DNA of 64,000 nt from Zygnema circumcarinatum SAG 698-1b (taxonomy: Eukaryota > Plantae > Zygnematophyceae): assembly GCA_037447605.1 (NCBI GenBank), contig CM074813.1, positions 1,426,001 through 1,490,000 on the forward strand, given 5' to 3'. Within the stretch, counting starts at the first letter, position 1. Each line of letters opens with the position of its first letter. Positions 41,060-63,800 of the stretch are shown one piece after another. The notes under the pieces are model-generated. The model was given only the letters and a program-made list of their open reading frames with translations, did not search any database and was not told where the DNA came from. The position numbers and the translations under genes were made by a program.

Positions 41060-42052
41060 TTAATGGGGAGGGGGAGGAATAACACACAGTCATACACGCA
41101 ACAAAAGCATAAGCGAAGGAACAAGAGGCACAAGCAAAGGAAGGGAAGACTGAGGCAAAGGCAACATAGCAAGGGGCAAAGGCAAAGGATGTCGGGGCAG
41201 GGGCAGGATGTCGGGGCAGGGGCAAGGGAGGTAAAATACGGAACGTGGAATGCGGAATGCAGCAAATAGCAGCAAACAGCAGCAACAGCAGAAGCAGCGG
41301 CAACAGCACAACAGCAACAGCATAAATAGGATATGAAGAAGAAGAAGAGGAAGCAGCAGGAGCAGAAAAAGCAAGAGCAAAAGCATAAAAAGCAGCAGCA
41401 GCAGCAATAGCCAAAAGAGCACCAAGGGATACAAGGGAGGCATGAGCAAAGGCGCGGGAGGCAGGGGCAGGTGCAAGAGAACAGGAGGCAGGGGCAAGGG
41501 CAAGGGAGGAAGGTGCAAGGGCACGGGAGGCAGGGGCAAGGGTAAGGGAGGCAGGGGCAAGGGCAAGGACTCACCGCTGCTCAAGTCCGCCGTCGTCCCT
41601 AAAAACCGATCGCGCTTTTGCCGTGGTCGACGGCACACCGCTCACCGTTCACCGTTCACTGGGGTGAGGCGAGAGGACGCTCTGCTCGCTCCGCTGCAAG
41701 GATGGCTCGGGTGGAGCCCTATACCCTAAACCCGAGCTGATCTGAGCTCGCTGAGAGCGAGCAGACGGGCAGGCGGCGGGCGCGAGGCGCCGCGGCGGGA
41801 CGCCGCTCGCGCGGTGGTGACGCGCATGGCGACAAAACGGAGGGCGGCGGGCGGCGGGCGGCGGGCGGCGGAGGGAGCGCGTGGGGCCGAAAAGGGGGGA
41901 GTCAGACTTGGCCCGGAGATACGGAGGCAAAATAATTACTCTCTGGAATTCGTGACGCCCGAGCCTGTCGAACGTCCACTTTTCGCGGAATTGGGCTGCC
42001 GTACAACGCGGAATTAGGGTCGGGGGCTTTCTGAATTGATTTGGCGCTGGTC

Positions 42053-43364
42053 TAAGGGTGGGTTTCCATCAGCCCGTTTCGTAACGAGCTTGTTACGGTC
42101 CACGTAGGATGCCGTTTTCAGATGGAACGACGAGTTCCATCAGAACGCCGTTGGCCAGCGTGGCAGTCGCACGCTGGCGGATCTTCGGTAGCCACGTGGC
42201 GGAACGCGAATGGTCGTAATGGCGTTACACCACCTCCGGAGCAGCATCCTGTGGAACGGTGCCTCGTTACCACGTGGCGCCACGTCGGCGCCACGTCGGC
42301 GGAAACGGCCTCATGGAACCCATGGGTCGTCGTCCATTACGACGCCACGTCGGAATAACGGGCTGATGGAACCCCACCCTAAGGGTGGGTTTCCATCAGC
42401 CCGTTTCGTAACGAGCTCGTTACGGTCCACGTAGGATGTCGTTTTCAGATGGAACGACGAGTTCCATCAGAACGCCGTTGGCCAGCGTGGCAGTCGCACG
42501 CTGGCGGATCTTCGGTAGCCACGTGGCGGAACGCGAATGGTCGTAATGGCGTTACACCACCTCCGGAGCAGCATCCTGTGGAACGGTGCCTCGTTACCAC
42601 GTGGCGCCACGTCGGCGCCACGTCGGCGGAAACGGCCTCATGGAACCCATGGGTCGTCGTCCATTACGACGCCACGTCGGAATAACGGGCTGATGGAACC
42701 CCACCCTAAGGGTGGGTTTCCATCAGCCCGTTTCGTAACGAGCTCGTTACGGTCCACGTAGGATGCCGTTTTCAGATGGAACGACGAGTTCCATCAGAAC
42801 GCCGTTGGCCAGCGTGGCAGTCGCACGCTTGCGGATCTTTGATAGCCACGTGGCGGCACGCGAATGGTCGTAATGGCGTTACACCACCTCCGGAGCAGCA
42901 TCCTGTGGAACGGTGCCTCGTTACCACGTGGCGCCACGTCGGCGCCACGTCGGCGGAAACGGCCTCATGGAACCCATGGGTCGTCGTCCATTACGACGCC
43001 ACGTCGGAATAACGGGCTGATGGAACCCCACCCTAAGGGTGGGTTTCCATCAGCCCGTTTCGTAACGAGCTCGTTACGGTCCACGTAGGATGTCGTTTTC
43101 AGATGGAACGACGAGTTCCATCAGAACGCCGTTGGCCAGCGTGGCAGTCGCACGCTTGCGGATCTTTGATAGCCACGTGGCGGCACGCGAATGGTCGTAA
43201 TGGCGTTACACCACCTCCGGAGCAGCATCCTGTGGAACGGTGCCTCGTTACCACGTGGCAGCCACGTCGGCGCCACGTTGGCGGAAACGGCCTCATGGAA
43301 CCCATGGGTCGTCCTCCATTACGACGCCACGTCGGAATAACGGGCTGATGGAACCCCACCCTAA
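42053..43364. mobile_element. Tandem array of four 324-bp Tourist (PIF/Harbinger)-like MITEs joined by shared TAA
   Basis: Units 42056-42379, 42383-42706, 42710-43033, 43037-43361. Each begins GGGTGGGTTTCCATCAGCCCGTT and ends AACGGGCTGATGGAACCCCACCC. TAA lies before, between and after the units. Period is 327 bp. Confidence 0.88.
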
Positions 43365-43424
43365 GTCTGACTCCCCCTATTTTGGATATCCCACCCCCTG
43401 TTTTGGATATTTCGGGAGGAGATA

Positions 43425-44270
43425 TCCCCTGCCCTCCCCTGCCCTGCCCTCCCTTGCCCTGCCTTCCCCTGCCCTCCCCTCCCTTGCCCTCCCCTCCACT
43501 CCCCTGCCCTGCCCTCCCTTGCCCTGCCTTCCCCTGCCCTCCCCTCCCTTGCCCTCCCCTCCACTCCCCTGCCCTGCCCTCCCTTGCCCTGCCTTCTGCC
43601 CTCCCCTCCCTTGCCCTCCCTCCCCTGCCCTGCCCTCCCTTGCCCTGCCTTCCCCTGCCCTCCCCTCCCTTGCCCTCCCCTCCCCTCCCCTGCCCTGCCC
43701 TGCCCTCCCTTGCCCGGGCGTCCCCTGCCGTCCTCTCCACTGCCCTCCCCTGCACTCCCCTGCCCTGCCCTCCCTTGCCCTGCCTTCCCCTGCCCTCCCC
43801 TCCCCTCCCCTCCCCTCCCCTCCCTTGCCCTCCCCTGCCCTCCCCTCCCCTGCCCTCCCCTCCCTTGCCCTCCCCTCCCCTCCCTTCCCCTCCCCTGCCC
43901 TGCCCTTCCCTGCCCTCCCCTCCCTTGCCCTCCCCTCCCTCCCTCCCTCCACTCCCCTGCCCTGCCCTCCCTTGCCCTGCCTTCCCCTGCCCTGCCCTCT
44001 CCTCCCTTGCCCTCCCCTCCCTTGCCCTCCCCTCCCTCCCCTGCCCTGCCCTCCCTTGCCCTGCCTTCCCCTGCCCTCCCCTCCCTTGCCCTCCCCTCCC
44101 CTCCCCTGCCCTGCCCTCCCTTGCCCTGCCTTCCCCTGCCCTCCCCCCCTCCCTTGCCCTCCCCTCCCCTTGCCCTCCCCTCCCCTCCCCTCCCCTGCCC
44201 TACCCCCTGCCCTCCCTTGCCCTACTCTCCCCTGCCCTCCCTTGCCCTACTCTCCCCTGCCCTCCCCTCT
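43425..44270. repeat. About 850-bp pyrimidine-rich pentamer array (CCCCT/CCCTG/CCTTG)n
   Basis: Almost purely C/T with periodic G. The opposite strand has dense GGG tracts. Confidence 0.92.
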
Positions 44271-45400
44271 TCTTCTCTCCTCTTCTCGGTTTGCAATGTC
44301 CACTGAAATGCTACCGACTGAGTACACCCGCGATGAACTCGTACAGCTCGCCTTAATTAGTGGGTGTACAATCCTAACCGCAAAACGAAGAGTAATGGTT
44401 GCCCCACATCGGTGACCTTCGCGGCTGCTTTTAGGGCTGCGTTTTTGCGCTTAGGCCTGGCCTAGTTTGGTTTTTTGTTTTTTTCTGCTCCTAGTTACTT
44501 TATTTTGTGCTTAGGTCCTTTGCGACCAGTTACTCGTGGTTGCGACTAGTTTCTCGTGGTTCCCCAAGAGAACCACGAGAAACTAGTCACAAAGGATCTT
44601 TGACTTTGTCCATGTTCATTTGATGGCCTCACCATCGTGAGATCAATGCAAATCCCCTTATCTTTTGTTGCACAATGTTGGAAGTTCAGTAGTGAAAAGG
44701 AGAAAACAAGGGGGTGGGATATCCAAAATAAGGGGGTGACATATCCAAAATATGGGGGCAGGATAACCAAAATGGGAGGGCAATTTAAAAAAAAAAAGGG
44801 GGGGGGGCTGAGATATCCAAAATAGGGGGTGCAGTCAGATTCTCCAAAAAAAAGTGGCAGTCCGACATAATAATATTCACATACCATCCCATGCTTCAAT
44901 CCAAGGAGACGTCCTTGTCTGAAAACTACCTACAAAGATAGCCTCTATCTAAGATCCCTCCCTTCTTCACATGTATCCGCCGCGAAATGTGAGCGCCTTG
45001 CTCTCTGCGAAAAGAATAGAAAGAACGAACATATGCCAAACCAACCTAAGTTCTAACAAAATTGAAATGTACGCCTCCCTTTCCAGCCCCTACTTACAAC
45101 AGCAACACACATCCATCTCATGCTCACCCCCAAACTTCCCCCCCCTCCGCTCCAACTTGCCGGGTTCTATGTCCAACCCGTTCCGACCTTTACACCCGCG
45201 CCCCCCGTCCACCGTCCACCAGCGCCGCCCTGCCTCTTGCTACAGCTCCCTCCCTCTCTCTCTCTCTCCCTCTCTCTCTCTCGTTGTCTGTAGTGCTGGT
45301 TTCCAGCGAGAGCTCCACGAGCTCGCCAATCCCCTCCCCTCCGCTCCCCCCCCCCCTCTCTCTCTCTTTCTCTCCCTCTCCCTCTCCCTCTCCCTCTCCC

Positions 45401-48400: not shown

Positions 48401-49182
48401 CTTCCTCGCTTCGTCTCTCTCCGCCTCCTCCTTCCTCTCCCTTCTCTCCTATTTCCGCGGCCCTGTTTCTCTCCGGCCCTAACTTCATCACCCCCTCCAA
48501 ACCTTACTTCATACATCCTATGCCGCTAATACATCCTTAACATAATCGAGTTCGGCCAAAAAACTGGAAAGGGCGTCGAACCTCATCCAGCATCTCGAGT
48601 ATTCAAATAAATTCGAGCAAATAAAAGACATATTCAGATATATTCATGCGTATACTGACCATGCCGCATAAGCACAAGCGTTGAAGTCACTTTGGAACTC
48701 CCCAAGACTTCGCCGCTTGAAGCTCCATCACCCTCCTGAGAGGCGGACCAATTGCGCAGATGTAGTCGTTCGGAATTTTCGGAGAATGCATCGGAAACCT
48801 CCTCAGAACTGCCCCTGTTGTCGCAGCTGCTGCTCTCGGCTTCCTCTCTCTCGCTTTCGGGATTCTCCGGTTGGGACGCAAAGTCCCCCTTCCGCGTTAG
48901 AGGCGGCGCCTTCAGGATCGCCACCGCGGTTCCATGTGTGAAATGCGATTCAGGTTGACGAATTCCAGCAGAGAATGGTTTCAGAGAGCGAAAGGAAAGC
49001 GAGGAGTGCGGCGAATACGAGGACGAGGCGGACAGAGCGGTGGCGGCGCGCGCGCTGTTGCCGCAGAAACTGGCTTCGAGGGGCCGCGAGGCGCAGCCGC
49101 CATCGCTTTGACGGAGGTTGGCCCCAAACTGCGCTGGCGGGCAGGCGCGCGCCACGGGCGGCGTGGGCGCGAGGGCGGCCAT
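45454..49182 (-). CDS. 2,3-bisphosphoglycerate-dependent phosphoglycerate mutase (histidine phosphatase superfamily, gpmA-like) with probable plastid transit peptide; 7 exons, about 435 aa
   Basis: Exons 49182-48660, 47723-47687, 47441-47300, 46797-46615, 46218-46117, 45930-45775, 45618-45454, phases consistent. Motifs [56 protein letters not shown]. The N-terminus is Ser/Ala/Arg-rich. Confidence 0.9.
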
Positions 49183-50914: not shown

Positions 50915-53900
50915 CTAACAAGGTCTGAAGGCCGAGGAGGCGGTGTGGGGCTGACTCGCTGATGAGGATGATGATGATGATGATGATGACGTCACGAGGA
51001 AGCGGAGGAAGGAGCCGGAGGCCTCCGCCGGCGCTTCTCTGTACACGGGCGGGAGAGGCTTCTGCAGGGGACGAGGCGACGGCGGAGGGGTAGGCGTCTC
51101 TTTGTTGGCGGCTGCGGGAGAAGGGAAGGAGAGGAGAAAGAGAGGGGAAAATGAGTCAGGTAAACGATTTAGAGGAGGGGAGGGGGTAGGAGGAGAAGGA
51201 GAGTGAGGGAAAGAGGGAGGGAGAGAAAGCTTCAAGGAAGAGGAGGACGAAAGGGAGGAAAGCAGGTGTAGGAAGAGGAATACGGGGCGTTTCGGAAGGG
51301 AAGGATTTGGAGACTGGCGGAGAAGGGAAAAAGGAGGTAAGGGAAAGGCGGAAGAAGAGAAGGAAGTAATGAAGGTTCTCCCTTACCGTTCTGCGTCACA
51401 TGCAGGTAAATGACCATAGCGCTGAGAATTACAATCAAAAGTAAAGCAGCACCACCTCCTACAGCAGCCGTAATAACTGGAGCATTGCTGCTGCTGCTAC
51501 CGCTACCGCTGGGACCTGCACACGGAAAAAAATGAACAATTTAATTGATCGACCACCTTTCAAAAATGACGAGGCTCCTGTGAATTTATGCAAGAAAGAG
51601 TATCAAACATGTACAGGGTTCCACACTATGATGCTGCATGGTGAGGTCTCACCATGGTCCTTACGAGCTTGAGGAGGGCTGCATCACGTTACCTGGCGGA
51701 GCAGGTGGTATTGAAGGGGGCGGCCCCTTTCCATCTTCGATTCGTGCAGGCGGAGCTGCACATGCGACCGTTCAACGAATTATTTCAGCGTTGCAAGTAA
51801 AAAACGCTCCCTCTCTTAAGAAGTTATTTTTACACATGCAAATAAACGCTACAACTCTATGCAATGCAGAGGCAGCAGCATCTGAAAGCAGATTTTTTTT
51901 AAAGGTGTACCTTCCCAGATCATGACCTGCGACATGGCTGCAAAACAATCCAAATCACGTCGACCTCCTCTAACAAGCTCACTCCTTGTGTGTCAGTTAT
52001 CGCTACAGAATGATGCTACTGTTTTTGCCTCTATCTCCACGGACCTGTGAGAGTTACATTTGCGAGTGAGAGAGCGCATGTCCCCGCGGCATGGTCCCAT
52101 GCAGGCACGACCAAATACTTGGCCCCATCGTTACCGAACACGTTGTAGACACCTGCAACGGGAAAAGTTAGTTCCATTTGAAAAAATGAAGATTAAGTTC
52201 CATTTGAGAAAATGAAGATTTTTCCATTTTCCATTGCCATTTTTTCCATTTTAGACTTAGTTCCATTTGTAATACCATCAATTCATAGGAACGAAGGGGG
52301 CACCGTGACCTAGGTATAGTAAGGCCTTGGTTGAGCATGGGATCAGCTTTGGAAGCAGCGATCGTATCAACATGCAAGCGAGACATGCAACATATTCTCG
52401 CCATACATAAAAACATGACAATCTGCTCGTCTTTCAAGTGAAGTGACTCACCCTTATCTGCATCAAAAATTACATCCGAGAAATTTTTGTAACAATAAGT
52501 TCCGATGCTGTTATTGAAAGGATCATGCCATCCGTTGCTCAGCGGATTCGTCATAATGTTGAGCAAATTGTAGCTTATTTCATATATTGTGCGATCAATT
52601 ATTGGACTCCCTGTAACTCGCTGAGCTGAAATGGCGTAACTGTAGCCACAGGAAGAGCAGCCGGAAGTATAAACCATCGAAATTTTTAGCGCAAGATTTT
52701 TAGTTTCGTCCATATGAACAGTGTGCTTGCTACAGGAACAAGCGTCCTCAACCTGCTTCACGATGAGGGGGGAGTGGTAGACGGAGTTGTAGTAAGTTGT
52801 CAGAAAGACTGGGAAAGAAAGAGGTGGGAAGAAGGGGAGAGTGAAGAGAGGAGGCGACAAAAATAGAGAATAAACAATAAAAAAAAAAAAAAAAAAAAAC
52901 CTCGTCCGCCCTCTTCCGTCCCTCTCTCTGTCGCTCCCTTGCCTTGTCTTAAAACAATTTCTTCGCATTCTCTCTGTCACCCGCCCTACTCACATTCTCT
53001 CCCCTCTCTCCACCCTCTCATCACTCTCTTCCTTCGTCAATCACCATTCCGATGCCTTGTTTACTTGCCTCGTTCTTCTCCCCACTTCCCTCTTTCTTTG
53101 CTGTCCCTCTCTCCCTCCCTCCCTCCCTCCCTCCCCCCTCGATTCCAGACATTCCCAACTCTCTCCCCAAATTATCCTCCCCTTGTCCCTCACCTCTTCC
53201 AATTCCCCCCTTCCACACTCGCTTTCACCCCCCCGTTCCTCTCCTTTCATTAATTGTTATAATTAATAACTTATTTCACTCACCCACGTTCCTAGCTACT
53301 GCCGCCCCTCCTCTCTCCCTCTCTCCTCTCTCCCTCTCTCCCACTATCCCTCTCTCCCTCTCTCTCCCCCCTCCAAGGGGCAGCTGCAGCTGAAGCTTCA
53401 CCTGAACATCGTCGCTTAGAAGTATGAAATAGATGGCATCCTCCTCCCACAAAAATCGATTCCCATTCGAAGCATTCTTCGCATTTTCGATAATCTTTAT
53501 CGTGGAATCCTCCATGCCCTTCACCGTGAAATTAGCGCCCCTCGAATAAGCATCATCCGCCGTGCCTGCCAAATTCACGGAAGGAGAAATGCGCCCATCG
53601 CTCGAACCATACCGCTCGAGCACGGCCCACCAATCTCCCAAATTAGGGTTTTGAGAGCTCACGCTTCCTGAACCCAGAGATAGAATAAACCCTTCTATGG
53701 CCTCTTTCTCCTGAGCAGCCCAGAGGCCGTAGAACACTAAGTAGATGCGCACTCCCCCGCCCATCACCGGCCCGCCATTGTACGATATGGGGCTCCCCAA
53801 AAACGAATTCTTATGATTTCCGTTCTTAATATTCGTCTCTAAATATACAAATCTGTTGTGGCCGAAGCCTCCCGCCGCCTCGAGGGGCCGCCCGGACGAA

Positions 53901-54115
53901 CCCTCCGTTCTTCTCCGCGGCTCCATGTGCCACGTGGATCCATCCGCCACGTGTCTCAATGCAGAAGAAGATCCTGCCATGGCGCACAGGATAAGGAGGA
54001 GGCTCCACGTGGCCACGTGGCGCGCCCTGCGGCAGCCCCCCCCGAGCTCCCCCGCCATGGCTGCCGCCTCCCCCCCCAGAGGGCGCCCGGGCGGACGGGC
54101 GGCTCCTCCCTCCAT
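50915..54115 (-). CDS. EXORDIUM/phosphate-induced protein 1 (Phi-1)-like protein with predicted C-terminal transmembrane segment and cytosolic tail; 5 exons, about 482 aa
   Basis: Exons 54115-53402, 52752-52452, 52152-52045, 51515-51387, 51111-50915, all phases consistent. Phi-1-like motifs ISYNGGPVM, IYLVFYG, FILSL, DWW, IYFILLSDDV, MTNPLSNGW, YNVFGNDGAKYLVVPAWD. Signal-peptide-like segment WSLLLILCAMAGSSSA. TM segment VITAAVGGGAALLLIVILSAMVIYL. Confidence 0.78.
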
Positions 54116-54475: not shown

Positions 54476-55005
54476 GTTTCACAGTTCGGACCAGTGGATC
54501 GGCAACCATTGGACAATCATTGGATAGCAATGGTTGGACGTCTACTGGTTGGCAACCAGTCGACTGGTTGCCAACCAGTGGCATCCACTGGTTCCAAACC
54601 AGTCGAATGGTTGCCAACCAGTGGCATCTGGATGGCAACCAGTCGAATGGTTGTTTCGGTCCGCAATCACTGGTTGGCAACCAGTCGAATGGTTGCCTAC
54701 CAGTTGATCCACTGGTTGGCAACCAGTCGACTGGTTTGGAACCAGTGGATGCCACTGGTTGGCAACCAGTCGAATGGTTGTTTCGGTCCGCAATCACTGG
54801 TTGGCAACCAGTCGAATGGTTGCCAACCAGTGGCATCCACTGGTTCCAAACCAGTCGAATGGTTGTTTCGGTCCTGAGCCACTGGTTGGCAACCAGTCGA
54901 ATGGTTGTTTCGGTCCTGAGCCACTGGTTGGCAACCAGTCGAATGGTTGTTTCGGTCCGCAACCACTGGTTGCCAACCAGTCGACTGGTTTGTCTAATGG
55001 TCCGA
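54476..55005. mobile_element. Non-autonomous element built from palindromic CTGGTTG(G/C)CAACCAG modules (copy 1)
   Basis: Starts TTTCACAGTTCGGACCAGTGGATCGG and ends ACTGGTTTGTCTAATGGTCCGATCTG. It contains many 15-bp palindromes and near-tandem units of about 42 bp around 54880-54965. Confidence 0.7.
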
Positions 55006-56153: not shown

Positions 56154-57847
56154 TTCACAGTTCGGACCAGTGGATCGGCAACCATTGGACAACCATTGGA
56201 TGGCAATGGTTGGACGTCTACTGGTTGGCAATCAGTCGACTGGTTGCCAACCAGTGGATGCCACTGGTTGGCAACCAGTCGAATGGTTGTTTCGGTCCGC
56301 AACCACTGGTTGGCAACCAGTCGAATGGTTGCCTACCAGTGGATCTACTGGTTGGCAACCAGTCGACTGGTTTGGAACCAGTGGATGCCACTGGTTGGCA
56401 ACCAGTCGACTGGTTTGGAACCACTGGATGCTGTTGGTGGAGGGACTCCTCCACTGCTGCCGTCCGTTCCTCCATTCGGGTCACCCTCCATCGGAGTTCG
56501 CGTTCCAATCGACGATGACATCTTCAAATCTCTCACATTCACTCATAGCCCATTTTACTCACAGAGTGAATCACAGCAAATAATGCACAGCGGAATAACA
56601 GAGAGAAATGAATAGGAGAAAGCTCCTGGCTCTAAAACTCCTTAATAGTGAATTCACTCATACATTGAGAGACCCCCTCTCAAATCGGCCGCTCAGCAAT
56701 CTCACAGCTCACTACCTCACAGCACGAGTAAGTGTAGTGTCGCAACACGAGCGAACAGCATAACAGAGACTACAACAGCCTGAATGAATTGTTTGCCTAC
56801 AACAAAAACAATCCTTAAATACTATGTCACTACACACGTGACAACAACATGCTACGGAGCTAACAACATCGACTAGCGGCCTGCAAGGGCCCTATCCCGA
56901 TCCTAATCCTGCGCCGTCGGATCCTCGTAGACTCACACGGATCCAGCCCTTTGCTTCCGTCGGATCCGACTCAGCCTTCCGTTCAATCCACGTCTTGCGC
57001 CGTAGGATCTGACCTTGCCTCCAAGATAGATGACGCGTCAATCCTCGCGTCGTCTCACGCCACCGACAATTCGACGCAGCTCCGTACAGTTCTGAATCGC
57101 GTGCCGACAATCTGACGCCACTTCGCGCCAAGTCCAAATCGGCCAATCCAAAGGCTGACGCCGCGCCACGTCACTTCAAATTTGCGCGCAGTTTCGCGCG
57201 TCGCGTCACATCTTCGATTCGCTCCGCGTCCGCGTCCGCGCCACGTCACATTTCAAATCGTCGCGTCACGCCTCGTCACTTCTGACTCCGCCGCGCCGCG
57301 CCTCTCCACCGACCAAAATCCGTACCGCCGCTCGTCGGTCTAGGCGCACATCGCCGCCAAGGGCCACACACAACACGCACACAAAACTAATGTCCCAACA
57401 ACAACTTGTCTAGTGACTAACTACTATACACTAACGGATGCTACTGGATGGCAACCAGTCGAATGGTTATATCCATTAAATCAAATGGTTGGCAACCATT
57501 AAATCACTAGTTGTAGCGAACTGAACGCTACAGTTACCAAAATGTCGTCGGCATTTCGGAGAAAACTATTACGGTTCGGCCGTACAGAACCATCGTACAA
57601 CCGTACGATTCGGATGTACGAATCCGTACATATCTGTACGCATCAGGCTTGTTACACTAGTTGTCAACGGTTGGCAACCAACCAAAAAACACAAACGACC
57701 CATTTTTGCAAAAAGGCATAATTTTAGAAATTCAATGGTTGCCAACCATTGAATCCAGTTCGAACGGTCGAATGGTTGTTTCAGTCCTGCGCCCACTGGT
57801 TCGCAACCAGTGGAAACTGGTTTGTCTAATGAAGTCCGTCTGTGAAA
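56154..57847. mobile_element. Second copy of the CTGGTTGGCAACCAG-module element, interrupted by a solo LTR
   Basis: Same start as 54476 (TTTCACAGTTCGGACCAGTGGATCGGCAACCATTGG) and same ACTGGTTTGTCTAATG near its end. It ends GTCCGTCTGTGAAA, which is TIR-like. Confidence 0.7.
56432..57436 (-). mobile_element. Solo LTR of a Ty1/copia family with 5-bp TSD GATGC
   Basis: Both ends align in reverse orientation to the LTR at 59786-60814 (TGTTGGTGG...CATTTTACTCACAGAG at one end; CACAAAACTAATGT...CTAACTA..ATACACTAAC at the other). GATGC occurs at 56427-56431 and 57437-57441. Confidence 0.82.
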
Positions 57848-60819: not shown

Positions 60820-63800
60820 TGGTATCGAGAGCTCATGACGACAGGGAGGACCGCGTCAAGTTGATATACCGGCGTTTGATGGGGCGGGGATTACAAGGCA
60901 TGGAGATGGAGGTTGGTGCCTTTGCTTGTGAAGCCGAGGGTTGCTTGGGCATGTTGTTGGCGCATCAAGGCGCGGAGTTACGGTTGGAGCCTGGCGGGCG
61001 GCGGTCCGGAGCACGGCGGTAAGCTACGATGGAAGGCCAAGGACAACAAAGCCACGACGCGATTGTTATGGCGTAAGAGGAAGTCCATCCTCTATCTTTT
61101 GTATGATCACGAAAACCTCTCATGCTATGTGGAAGGAAGTGTCACAGGGAGATGTATGATGTGAAAGACAATGTGACTATAGTGAGTGGAGTCTTTACCT
61201 TCGGCCCCAGAAGCCGAATGAAGATGACGGAGGAGAAACTAGAAGCTTATATGAGGTGGGATTTGATGCATTGATGGAGAGGTTCATAGCACTTGGGAAG
61301 CGGATTAGATCACCGGACCATAAGATAAGAAGCCCCCGGTTCTAAGGGGTTTGCCGGAGATTCAGTTTAGGTGGCGGCCTTGAGGCGGTTAGAATACATG
61401 GCGGCGAGCGAGTTAGCGTAGGATAAAGAGGAGGGAGGATTGATTGAGGGATGTCGGCCAAGAGAAGAAGGTGCTGGCGTTGCACACGACCGAATCGAAG
61501 AGGAGGAGGCGCCCCGAAGTCAGCCCGAGGAGAACGCTCGAATGTGACATGCTTCACATGTGGCAAGACCGGCCCACTACCGGCTGACATTTCCGTTTCA
61601 TGATCGGAGAAGGGAGAGGAAACGACTTCATCCGGCAGAAGAAGGAGAAAGAGGCGTTCCGGTGGCGCTTGTTTGAAGTGCAAGAAGGAGAGGTAGCGGG
61701 GATTGAGGCTATGAGTACTTGATTGAAACGACCTACATCTTTGGCGAGAATCACGGAAACGCCGCGATTTTGTGGGAAGGATTGAGCGAGAGGGCTGGCG
61801 GCGTGGGCGATTGACTCCGGCGCGTCCTTACGTATGTCTTGAGGCGCATCGATGTTCTCAAAGCTCGACACCTTGGGCGGACTTCGCTGGAGTTCATTCG
61901 GCAACGATTGAAGGAGTCCGTGGCCGAGGTGGAAGTGAGGATGGTCACCGAGCGGCTGCGGTCATGGTTGAGCGGGAAAGCTGCGCGTGGTGATGATATT
62001 CTTCACCCACTGGCCTGCATCTGCGAGAATTTCATGTCACGTGAGCCAAGGGTGTGCAGGAATCTGATGTTACATTTGAGGGGAGAAGTCATGCGTGGCA
62101 TCTGGCTCCCGAGGCGGGAGGCAGTATTCGGGGGTTATGAGAGGAGGGCGTATTATCTTGATTATAAGAGGGAGAATCATGAGGGAGGTGAATGCGGTTC
62201 GAGGAGAATGCGTGATGTATGGCATGGTAGACTTGGTCCGAATTTGGTGAGGGAGGCTAGTCACAGAGTGGGCTGGGCAGGGTGTAGTGGAGAAGGAGTT
62301 GGGGGTTTCTTGAAATGTGTGGAGGGGAACCAAGGCCTGCCTGAGGAAATGACCTTGTGAGGTGAGCGAGGTCACATCGGCCAGCCGAGAGAAGTTGGGT
62401 GAGGTGCGTTCACGACTTGTGTGGCCCGGTTACGCGGCGACGGTGGCGGGCGAGGTACTTAGATCACCTTCGCCCACAGCGACTATTAGAGGGAAGATTT
62501 GGATTACACTCCTGAAGAACAAGTCAGAGGCCTTCGGAGCCTTTCGAGACTGGCTAAACGAGGCGGAGACAGAGACGGGACTGAAGCTGAAGGCTTTCCG
62601 CTCAGACAATGGTGGCGAGTTCAAATCGAAGGAATTCGCGGCGTTTCGGAAGAACCGCGGTATAAGGCATGAATTCTCGATACATTCCCCGCGAGTAATG
62701 GGCGGTGAGCGTGTGAATGGGACATTGGGGGCATGCTTGGAGACCATGTTGATTGATTCCCCTTTCAGGCTTCCTTTTTGGTGAGAGTTTCTAAAATTTA
62801 TTTACGTAGGGAAACGGTCGTAAGATGTACGTTACGAAAGGCAGAATCCCTGGCGGATGTGGAGTGGGAGGGAAGCCCAGCGATTTCCACACGAGGAAGG
62901 ACCTTTTGGTAGCGCGCGATCTTTGGGCTACGCGCCCCAAAGCGCGAAGAAGAATTCGGCCGGCGTGGGGAGACTCGTGCTTTCGGCTTCACAACACAGC
63001 GGCCCGCACATACGGGGTTTGGAACCCTCGGTGAAGAGTTCTCCGGGCGAGGCATTACGATTGATGAAGATATGAGTGTGGTTGGCGTGTTGCAGAACTC
63101 ACCAGATCTTACACACTCCGGCCGAGAAGACGACCTCGAGATGCATTATGCGAGGAGGGAAAGCTTGTTGATTGGAGAAGGGGTAGTGCTTTGTGCGGGT
63201 GCAGCGCGTCGGCAAAAGAGGAAACGTGGCGGCGACAAGTGGCCGGTGATGATGTGAAACGCCCGTGTGGAGGCGCATGCGAGGAGGAAACGCCGCGATT
63301 CGGCGGAGGCGATTCGCTCCGGTTGGTGAAAGGGAAGGGGAAACTTCGGTGGAGAGCGGTCAAGCGCAAGATTGAGAAGGGAAGGATCTTAGGCGGCGAG
63401 AGGGAGAACAATGTTAGCGAACATGCCCCAGTTTTGTTCCGGACTCTCTTTCTACGAGGGCAGTCTGCGAAACGTTGATCCGGGGCTGAACAGAGGCGAC
63501 GGTCGGTTTTCGCTGGTGCCGATCGGTCAGAGAGTGCCATCGGTCGGTGACCTTGTGGGGAGTTGCCCCTTGCTTGTTTTCGTGGTCCTGCAGAGCCACT
63601 GAGACCTTTGAGGAGGCGCCGCGGCTGGTGGAATGGCGATAAGTGGCCGGGTTGCGTTGTGCTTGAATGGGGCAGGCGTCGAAGGAAGCGACGCGTGGAG
63701 ATTGGAGGGCGCCTGAGGGGAGGCCCATTTGCTCCGGCGGTACACCGTGGTCTTCTGGAAGGTCAAAGAGGAAGGCTGGGGCGGGCGTGGACCCTAGGTG

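Follow-up and report, generated by a model that had tools for sequence, protein, structure and literature searches.

A gene on the minus strand of a 64,000-nucleotide stretch of the Zygnema circumcarinatum SAG 698-1b genome (contig CM074813.1 of assembly GCA_037447605.1, forward-strand positions 1,426,001 to 1,490,000) appears to encode a PHI-1/EXORDIUM protein that is tethered to the membrane. This whole stretch is referred to below as the window, and all positions are counted from its first nucleotide. The gene forms an intact chain of five exons that runs from 54058 down to 50915 in what is green-lineage eukaryotic DNA, and its predicted product joins an ectodomain of the Phi_1 family to a Ser/Gly-rich linker, one hydrophobic helix and a short tail. 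We regard the anchored architecture by itself as likely; the same architecture taken together with a non-catalytic, receptor-like role is favoured with only moderate assurance.

EXORDIUM (EXO) proteins and their EXORDIUM-LIKE (EXL) counterparts stimulate cell expansion and connect growth with carbon status, and we know of no biochemical action that has been assigned to them. As the first-pass annotation of this DNA had stated, land-plant EXO is described as secreted: it is an apoplastic protein of ~300 residues, with neither a glycosylphosphatidylinositol (GPI) signal nor a membrane helix (PMC2661892). EXL proteins are treated as wall proteins in studies of zygnematophytes. The membrane-tethered layout predicted here from the sequence would depart from the soluble layout described for the Phi_1 family. 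Within the literature searched, we found no paper describing a membrane-anchored EXO, an absence that is not proof of novelty.

Results

Its sequence places the gene in the Phi_1 family. Protein searches were made exon by exon, and the Pfam Phi_1 profile (PF04674) matched exon 1 with 57 bits against a cut-off of 25 (expectation (E) value 2.6e-15, profile positions 2-122), followed by weak matches in exons 2 and 3 to profile positions 130-225 and 250-274 of 276, in colinear order. A match to this Pfam hidden Markov model had been set beforehand as the test of the family assignment made in the first-pass annotation, and the assignment holds across the three colinear exons. A profile built from 59 homologues detected exons 1, 2 and 3 with E values of 8e-35, 2e-13 and 2e-6, respectively, its positions 1-121, 127-218 and 229-252 (of 252) being covered in order. 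In tblastn comparisons with homologues, the alignments end at the exon borders that we had deduced, those for exon 1 stopping at 53399-53405. Cysteines fall in the F-C, Y-C, C-P..C and A-D-x-C columns and in that of the final C, and all six conserved Cys positions are filled; the Glu that nearly all Phi_1 members keep before the last-but-one Cys is missing from this gene. The N-x-S/T sequons of the ectodomain, earlier noted only as several, number five.

Exon 1 (54058-53402; minus strand, as for every feature of the gene) comprises 219 codons and ends in phase 0 at the donor CAG/gtgaag. It contains the start codon, a signal-peptide-like N terminus, a spacer of ~55 residues and the N-terminal half of Phi_1. 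The ATG at 54058, preceded at -3 by a purine and followed at +4 by G, is taken as the start because an upstream in-frame ATG at 54115 has the poorer context (T at -3). Residues 1-33 (54058-53960) are probably a signal peptide, to judge from an Arg-rich start, a hydrophobic core whose Kyte-Doolittle 19-residue maximum is 1.59 (residues 15-33) and S-S-A before the likely cut, with the -3/-1 rule judged by eye. Intron 1 (53401-52753; 649 nucleotides), in which GA and GGGA repeats are abundant, separates this exon from exon 2 (52752-52452; 301 nucleotides), which covers the middle of Phi_1 with its conserved Cys pairs and ends in phase 1 at the donor gtgagt. Exon 3 (52152-52045; 108 nucleotides, phase 1 to phase 1, donor CAG/gtccgt) supplies the C-terminal motif of Phi_1 together with the last of the conserved Cys residues, and includes an N-V-T sequon.

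Two further exons follow in phase. Exon 4 (51515-51387; 129 nucleotides, donor ACG/gtaagg) has a strong acceptor, a T-rich tract and then cag, and encodes the Ser/Gly linker, then the predicted membrane helix and the first part of the juxtamembrane segment. Exon 5 (51111-50915; 197 nucleotides) encodes a 65-residue tail and closes with a TAG stop at 50917-50915, after which the sequence is AT-rich and resembles a 3' untranslated region (UTR). GT-AG is present at every junction, and the phases are compatible throughout exons 1-5. We infer the joins 52045/51515 and 51387/51111 from these phases and splice signals; the first-pass annotation had proposed the same two junctions as phase-compatible, and both are GT-AG and in phase. 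GC content at third codon positions varies by exon, from 0.35 to 0.67, and is uninformative. There may be one more exon between exon 3 and the helix exon, at 51755-51693 in intron 3, where a phase-neutral candidate cassette of 63 nucleotides would encode a Pro-rich stalk of 21 residues and, if used, would make this a six-exon gene. Its polypyrimidine tract is weak and, because intron 3 holds other open in-phase candidates, the cassette alone is not beyond chance.

The predicted membrane helix (51477-51403) spans 25 residues, includes a G-G-G-A-A small-residue patch and gives its exon a maximum Kyte-Doolittle 19-residue mean of 2.55. No Lys or Arg precedes the helix within 15 residues; the 30 residues that follow it contain K, R, K and R. 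The tail is Pro-rich and then poly-Ser, contains P-x-x-P and P-P-V-Y (found by eye) and has no Pfam match; its Ser run is encoded by a (TCA)10 microsatellite at 50989-50960. What had been described at this end of the protein was thus recovered in each part: a Ser/Gly linker leading into a hydrophobic helix of ~25 residues with a small-residue motif, and a Pro/Ser-rich tail of ~70 residues that ends in a Ser run. The signal-peptide-like start, the ectodomain, the one helix and the short tail are all present in phase, given the joins deduced above. If that splicing is real, the phase-compatible exons add the helix and tail, and the product would not have the soluble, anchor-free layout of EXO/EXL.

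The helix exon was also set against chance. Over the two strands of the whole window, 8425 AG..GT candidate exons that are open and in phase were enumerated. Helix scores of at least 2.5 occur at three places only, namely at 28.3 kb, in a low-complexity block at 41.3-41.6 kb and in exon 4; since there are so few, chance alone would yield only ~0.02-0.03 helix-like candidate exons over the 1.13 kb that follow exon 3. As a separate observation, the segment 28292-28453 on the plus strand is the sole other non-repetitive, open, splice-flanked candidate for a strong helix in the window, and may belong to a membrane-protein gene.

Searching 1.84 billion representative proteins by HMMER with exon 1 yielded 232 relatives, the best match being a Closterium protein that is 41% identical. 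Among the matches listed, ~60 representatives have a Phi_1 domain that reaches the domain's C-terminal end, and two clusters have a clear helix after it. Most homologues stop 3-10 residues past the last Cys. Many other algal and lycophyte members carry C-terminal modules that are Pro-rich, Cys-rich, CUB-like or of the FG-GAP type, and the many kinds of module indicate that the Phi_1 domain has been widely shuffled. One helix-bearing relative, P0038 (397 residues), has its Phi_1 domain at 86-329, from which a linker of ten residues leads to a helix and then a 30-residue tail; it is encoded as one open reading frame (ORF) in a 1642-nucleotide contig, SRR8128906_52591, that resembles a messenger RNA (mRNA) with 5' and 3' UTRs. 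Another, P0105 (914 residues), comes from a EukProt transcriptome and combines Phi_1 with a stalk, a helix and a Pkinase domain. Phi_1 is also among the receptor-kinase ectodomains listed in a preprint (10.1101/2023.12.21.572927). The existence of P0038, with a helix and a short tail, and of P0105, with a helix and a kinase, makes an anchored layout plausible for the Zygnema gene.

For each of the three ectodomain exons, P0038 is the alignment row of greatest similarity, with identities of 30, 29 and 34%. In a tree of exon 2 the gene is sister to P0038 (Shimodaira-Hasegawa-like approximate likelihood-ratio test (SH-aLRT) 84), and the approximately unbiased test (p-AU 0.58) does not reject a clade formed by the three proteins with a helix. 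P0038 and the predicted Zygnema protein have in common Phi_1, a short linker, a single helix and a short tail, and both are without a kinase, H-E-x-x-E or E-N-x-D. They differ in that identity is ~30%, the linker is basic in P0038 and Ser/Gly-rich here, and the 30-residue tail of P0038 is dissimilar. A word search with P0038 returned P0038 itself only, and a feature search of the ESM Atlas with it yielded nothing beyond low-scoring, ordinary Phi_1 clusters. With P0105 the gene shares a Phi_1 domain with degenerate motifs and one helix that bears a G-G-G patch, the stalk in the receptor kinases being Ser/Ala-rich. Compared with Arabidopsis EXO/EXL, the predicted protein retains the plan of a signal peptide, one Phi_1 domain and the conserved Cys pattern, and would extend it by a stalk, one membrane helix and a tail in the cytosol.

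The gene is not a receptor kinase. When P0105, kinase included, was compared with the whole window by tblastn at E values up to 1, Phi_1 exons were the only matches and no kinase exon was found. The description of the gene as kinase-less is upheld by this result, which sets the gene apart from the PHI-1 receptor kinases, with their cytosolic Pkinase. A further suggestion, that the gttagt motif at the stop might splice onward to additional exons, found no support: no coding partner lies downstream, UTR-like sequence follows, and the next gene is close. That neighbour, on the same strand, starts near 49182, ~1.7 kb downstream of the stop, and extends over 49182-45937. It has a transit-peptide-like start and a first ORF that ends with an R-H-G motif (by eye); with a weak match to His_Phos_1 (E 0.012), it resembles a histidine phosphatase of the phosphoglycerate-mutase type.

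Algal and bacterial core members of the family keep three motifs, H-E-x-x-E-x-x-T-D-P, C-G-x-H and E-N-A-D-x-C. In the alignment columns of the first of these (H-E-L-x-E-x-x-T-D-P), the Zygnema gene has the degenerate sequence Y-N-L-L-N-I-M-T-N-P (52572-52543), such that Y, N, N and N replace H, E, E and D at four candidate metal or catalytic positions. In addition, S-I-G-T-Y-C is found where the core family has E-N-A-D-x-C. P0038 and P0105 are degenerate at the same motif places. The full set of motifs is kept in 24 of the 59 alignment rows, and the rows of land-plant-type EXO are also without H-E-x-x-E; the loss of this motif is therefore not special to anchored forms. The earlier claim of a divergent ectodomain holds: Y-N-L-L-N does stand where most algal and bacterial homologues have H-E-L-x-E.

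Fold was considered on models of two homologues, P0033 (residues 100-380, by AlphaFold) and P0038. For P0033, a canonical Closterium domain modelled with a predicted local distance difference test (pLDDT) score of 94.5, catalytic domains of zincins and metzincins account for most of the top 25 rows from the PDB. The best structural matches are ADAM22 (Z 8.5, 156 residues, 3.7 Å) and archaemetzincin (Z 8.2), and next come snake-venom, ADAM, ADAMTS, ulilysin and fragilysin-type domains, with alignments of 150-175 residues. The P0038 model (pLDDT 79.9, helix at 339-370) matches the same metzincin families at Z 6.4-7.7, including ADAM22 at 7.7. In the P0033 model, a long helix (191-209) carries the family motif at its C-terminal end, with T-D-P just after. 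Zincins carry H-E-x-x-H at that place, the C-terminal end of a long helix. H-E-x-x-H is absent from every Phi_1 family member examined, and the 59-homologue profile found no match among the sequences of solved structures.

On these models, the Phi_1 domain as a whole looks metzincin-like in fold; by motif, this gene is not a metzincin. Because the homologue models are metzincin-like and the motifs have been lost, the ectodomain may be read as derived from a metal enzyme, with activity lost and only binding left, and it is probably a non-catalytic binding module. In the literature on EXORDIUM we found no paper that links the domain to zincins or to a protease-like fold, although the library searched was limited and the absence is not proof of novelty.

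Several observations weigh against an anchored, non-catalytic protein. The gene's own product is absent among the 1.84 billion representatives in the full HMMER search with exon 1, where nothing exceeds the 41% identity of the best match, and word searches with exon 1 and with the stop-free ORF that holds exon 2 gave no match. Seven sequencing runs from four studies contain 0.51-0.58 of the sampled words, a share that matches neither pure mRNA (~0.45, by exonic-word count) nor complete DNA and that we do not count as evidence of expression. The grouping in the exon-2 tree unites the three longest branches, and the exon-1 tree is unresolved, with the helix-bearing proteins not grouped. The helix region has no similarity to that of P0038, and its match to P0105 (E 0.014, from a single comparison) is too weak to be relied on. 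The structural matches, which belong to models of homologues, are of middling strength, with Z at most 8.5 and a best Foldseek E value of 6e-3. Finally, the exon 3 donor, gtccgt, is the weakest of the gene, and when it is left unspliced a stop at 52031 follows after four codons, giving a normal-looking end for a secreted Phi_1 protein.

This last feature bears on whether the gene simply encodes an ordinary secreted PHI-1/EXORDIUM protein, from a transcript that reads through to the stop at 52031 and ends soon after exon 3, with the helix and tail exons in no mRNA. Read-through would add only the four residues to a normal Phi_1 C terminus, most homologues do finish within 3-10 residues of the last Cys, and the 52045/51515 join is our deduction. 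Such a protein leaves unexplained an in-phase exon that has a strong acceptor and places a Ser/Gly linker before a helix, a coincidence put at ~0.03 by chance; moreover, the closest homologue, P0038, has the same layout in one mRNA, and the UTR-like AT-rich stretch follows the stop at 50915 rather than that at 52031. We consider an exclusively secreted product unlikely. The weak donor with its immediate in-frame stop, and the phase-neutral candidate cassette within intron 3, would also fit the production of both forms, a membrane-anchored protein when intron 3 is spliced and a soluble wall form when it is retained. Retention transcripts are often noise and the proposal is deductive throughout, and we give it slightly less credence again.

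Other alternatives concern the state of the protein rather than its splicing. Receptor kinases with a PHI-1 ectodomain exist, as P0105 and the preprint cited above attest, and the gene could be the decayed remnant of one that lost its kinase exons, evolving neutrally or unexpressed; its highly divergent, long-branched ectodomain and its low-complexity tail with a microsatellite would suit such a history. Decay is hard to reconcile with exons that are all open, six conserved Cys positions and splice sites that are all intact, and a clean stop followed by UTR-like sequence, and P0038 shows a kinase-less form expressed elsewhere, which together render a remnant decidedly improbable. An active membrane-bound hydrolase, in the manner of a sheddase-like metzincin relative, would draw on the metzincin-like fold of the homologues. 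With H, E, E and D replaced by Y, N, N and N, and the E-N-x-D motif lost as well, we attach hardly any probability to it. A membrane-anchored protein with a non-catalytic ectodomain accords best with the material as a whole.

The rest of the window holds several features of its own. Just upstream of the gene are two arrays, at 54540-54992 and 56216-56431, of a tandem repeat of ~42 nucleotides that contains palindromic GGTTGGCAACC-type units. An ORF at 62362-62781 on the plus strand resembles a fragment of a retrotransposon integrase core (rve, E 1.7e-5, below the Pfam cut-off). Low-complexity blocks at ~43240-44415 (plus strand) and 41300-41600 (minus strand) contain L-P-S-P/L-P-C-P repeats in several frames and, as far as examined, are repeat DNA rather than genes. 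Short runs of N at ~45400 and ~55650, within dinucleotide and Pro-codon repeats, are probably small assembly gaps.

Discussion

The best explanation that we can offer for this gene is a type I single-pass protein, in which a signal peptide and a Phi_1 ectodomain would be followed by a Ser/Gly stalk, one helix and a cytosolic tail of ~70 residues. The stalk might be lengthened by the Pro-rich cassette, and the tail, Pro-rich and then poly-Ser, would be disordered and carry no kinase. We infer the type I topology, the non-catalytic state and the receptor role alike. On this model, the ectodomain would act as a binding module kept in place where plasma membrane and cell wall meet, and a wall or apoplastic ligand would be reported or organized by a kinase-less receptor-like protein, as with the inactive ADAMs. 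Signalling could proceed through a partner, for example a PHI-1 receptor kinase of the same lineage contacted by the small-residue face of the helix. Alternatively, it could proceed through docking or phosphorylation sites in the tail, where P-x-x-P and P-P-x-Y-like motifs and the Ser run are found.

The parallel with inactive ADAMs is one of fold and layout. ADAM22 is a type I membrane protein whose metzincin-type domain is without catalytic residues and which serves as a receptor, and it ranks first among the structures matched by the homologue models. The likeness does not amount to membership, as there is no sequence relationship to ADAM22, and the disintegrin, Cys-rich and EGF modules are lacking here.

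A broader proposal, which we put forward tentatively and think rather unlikely, is that streptophyte algae have a family of tethered PHI-1/EXORDIUM proteins, comprising both kinase-less anchors and receptor kinases. A metzincin-like metal enzyme would be the ancestor of their now inactive ectodomain, and the secreted EXO/EXL growth regulators of land plants would represent the soluble offshoot of an ancient module for sensing at the cell surface. The long-unexplained EXO family would then gain both a structural origin and a receptor context.

If the anchored, non-catalytic reading is true, a tethered kinase-less form beside kinase-bearing ones would cast the Phi_1 domain as a surface binding module with candidate partners. 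The metzincin-like fold of the homologue models, coupled with the H-E-x-x-E...D pattern of basal members, offers a testable idea of what the domain may descend from.

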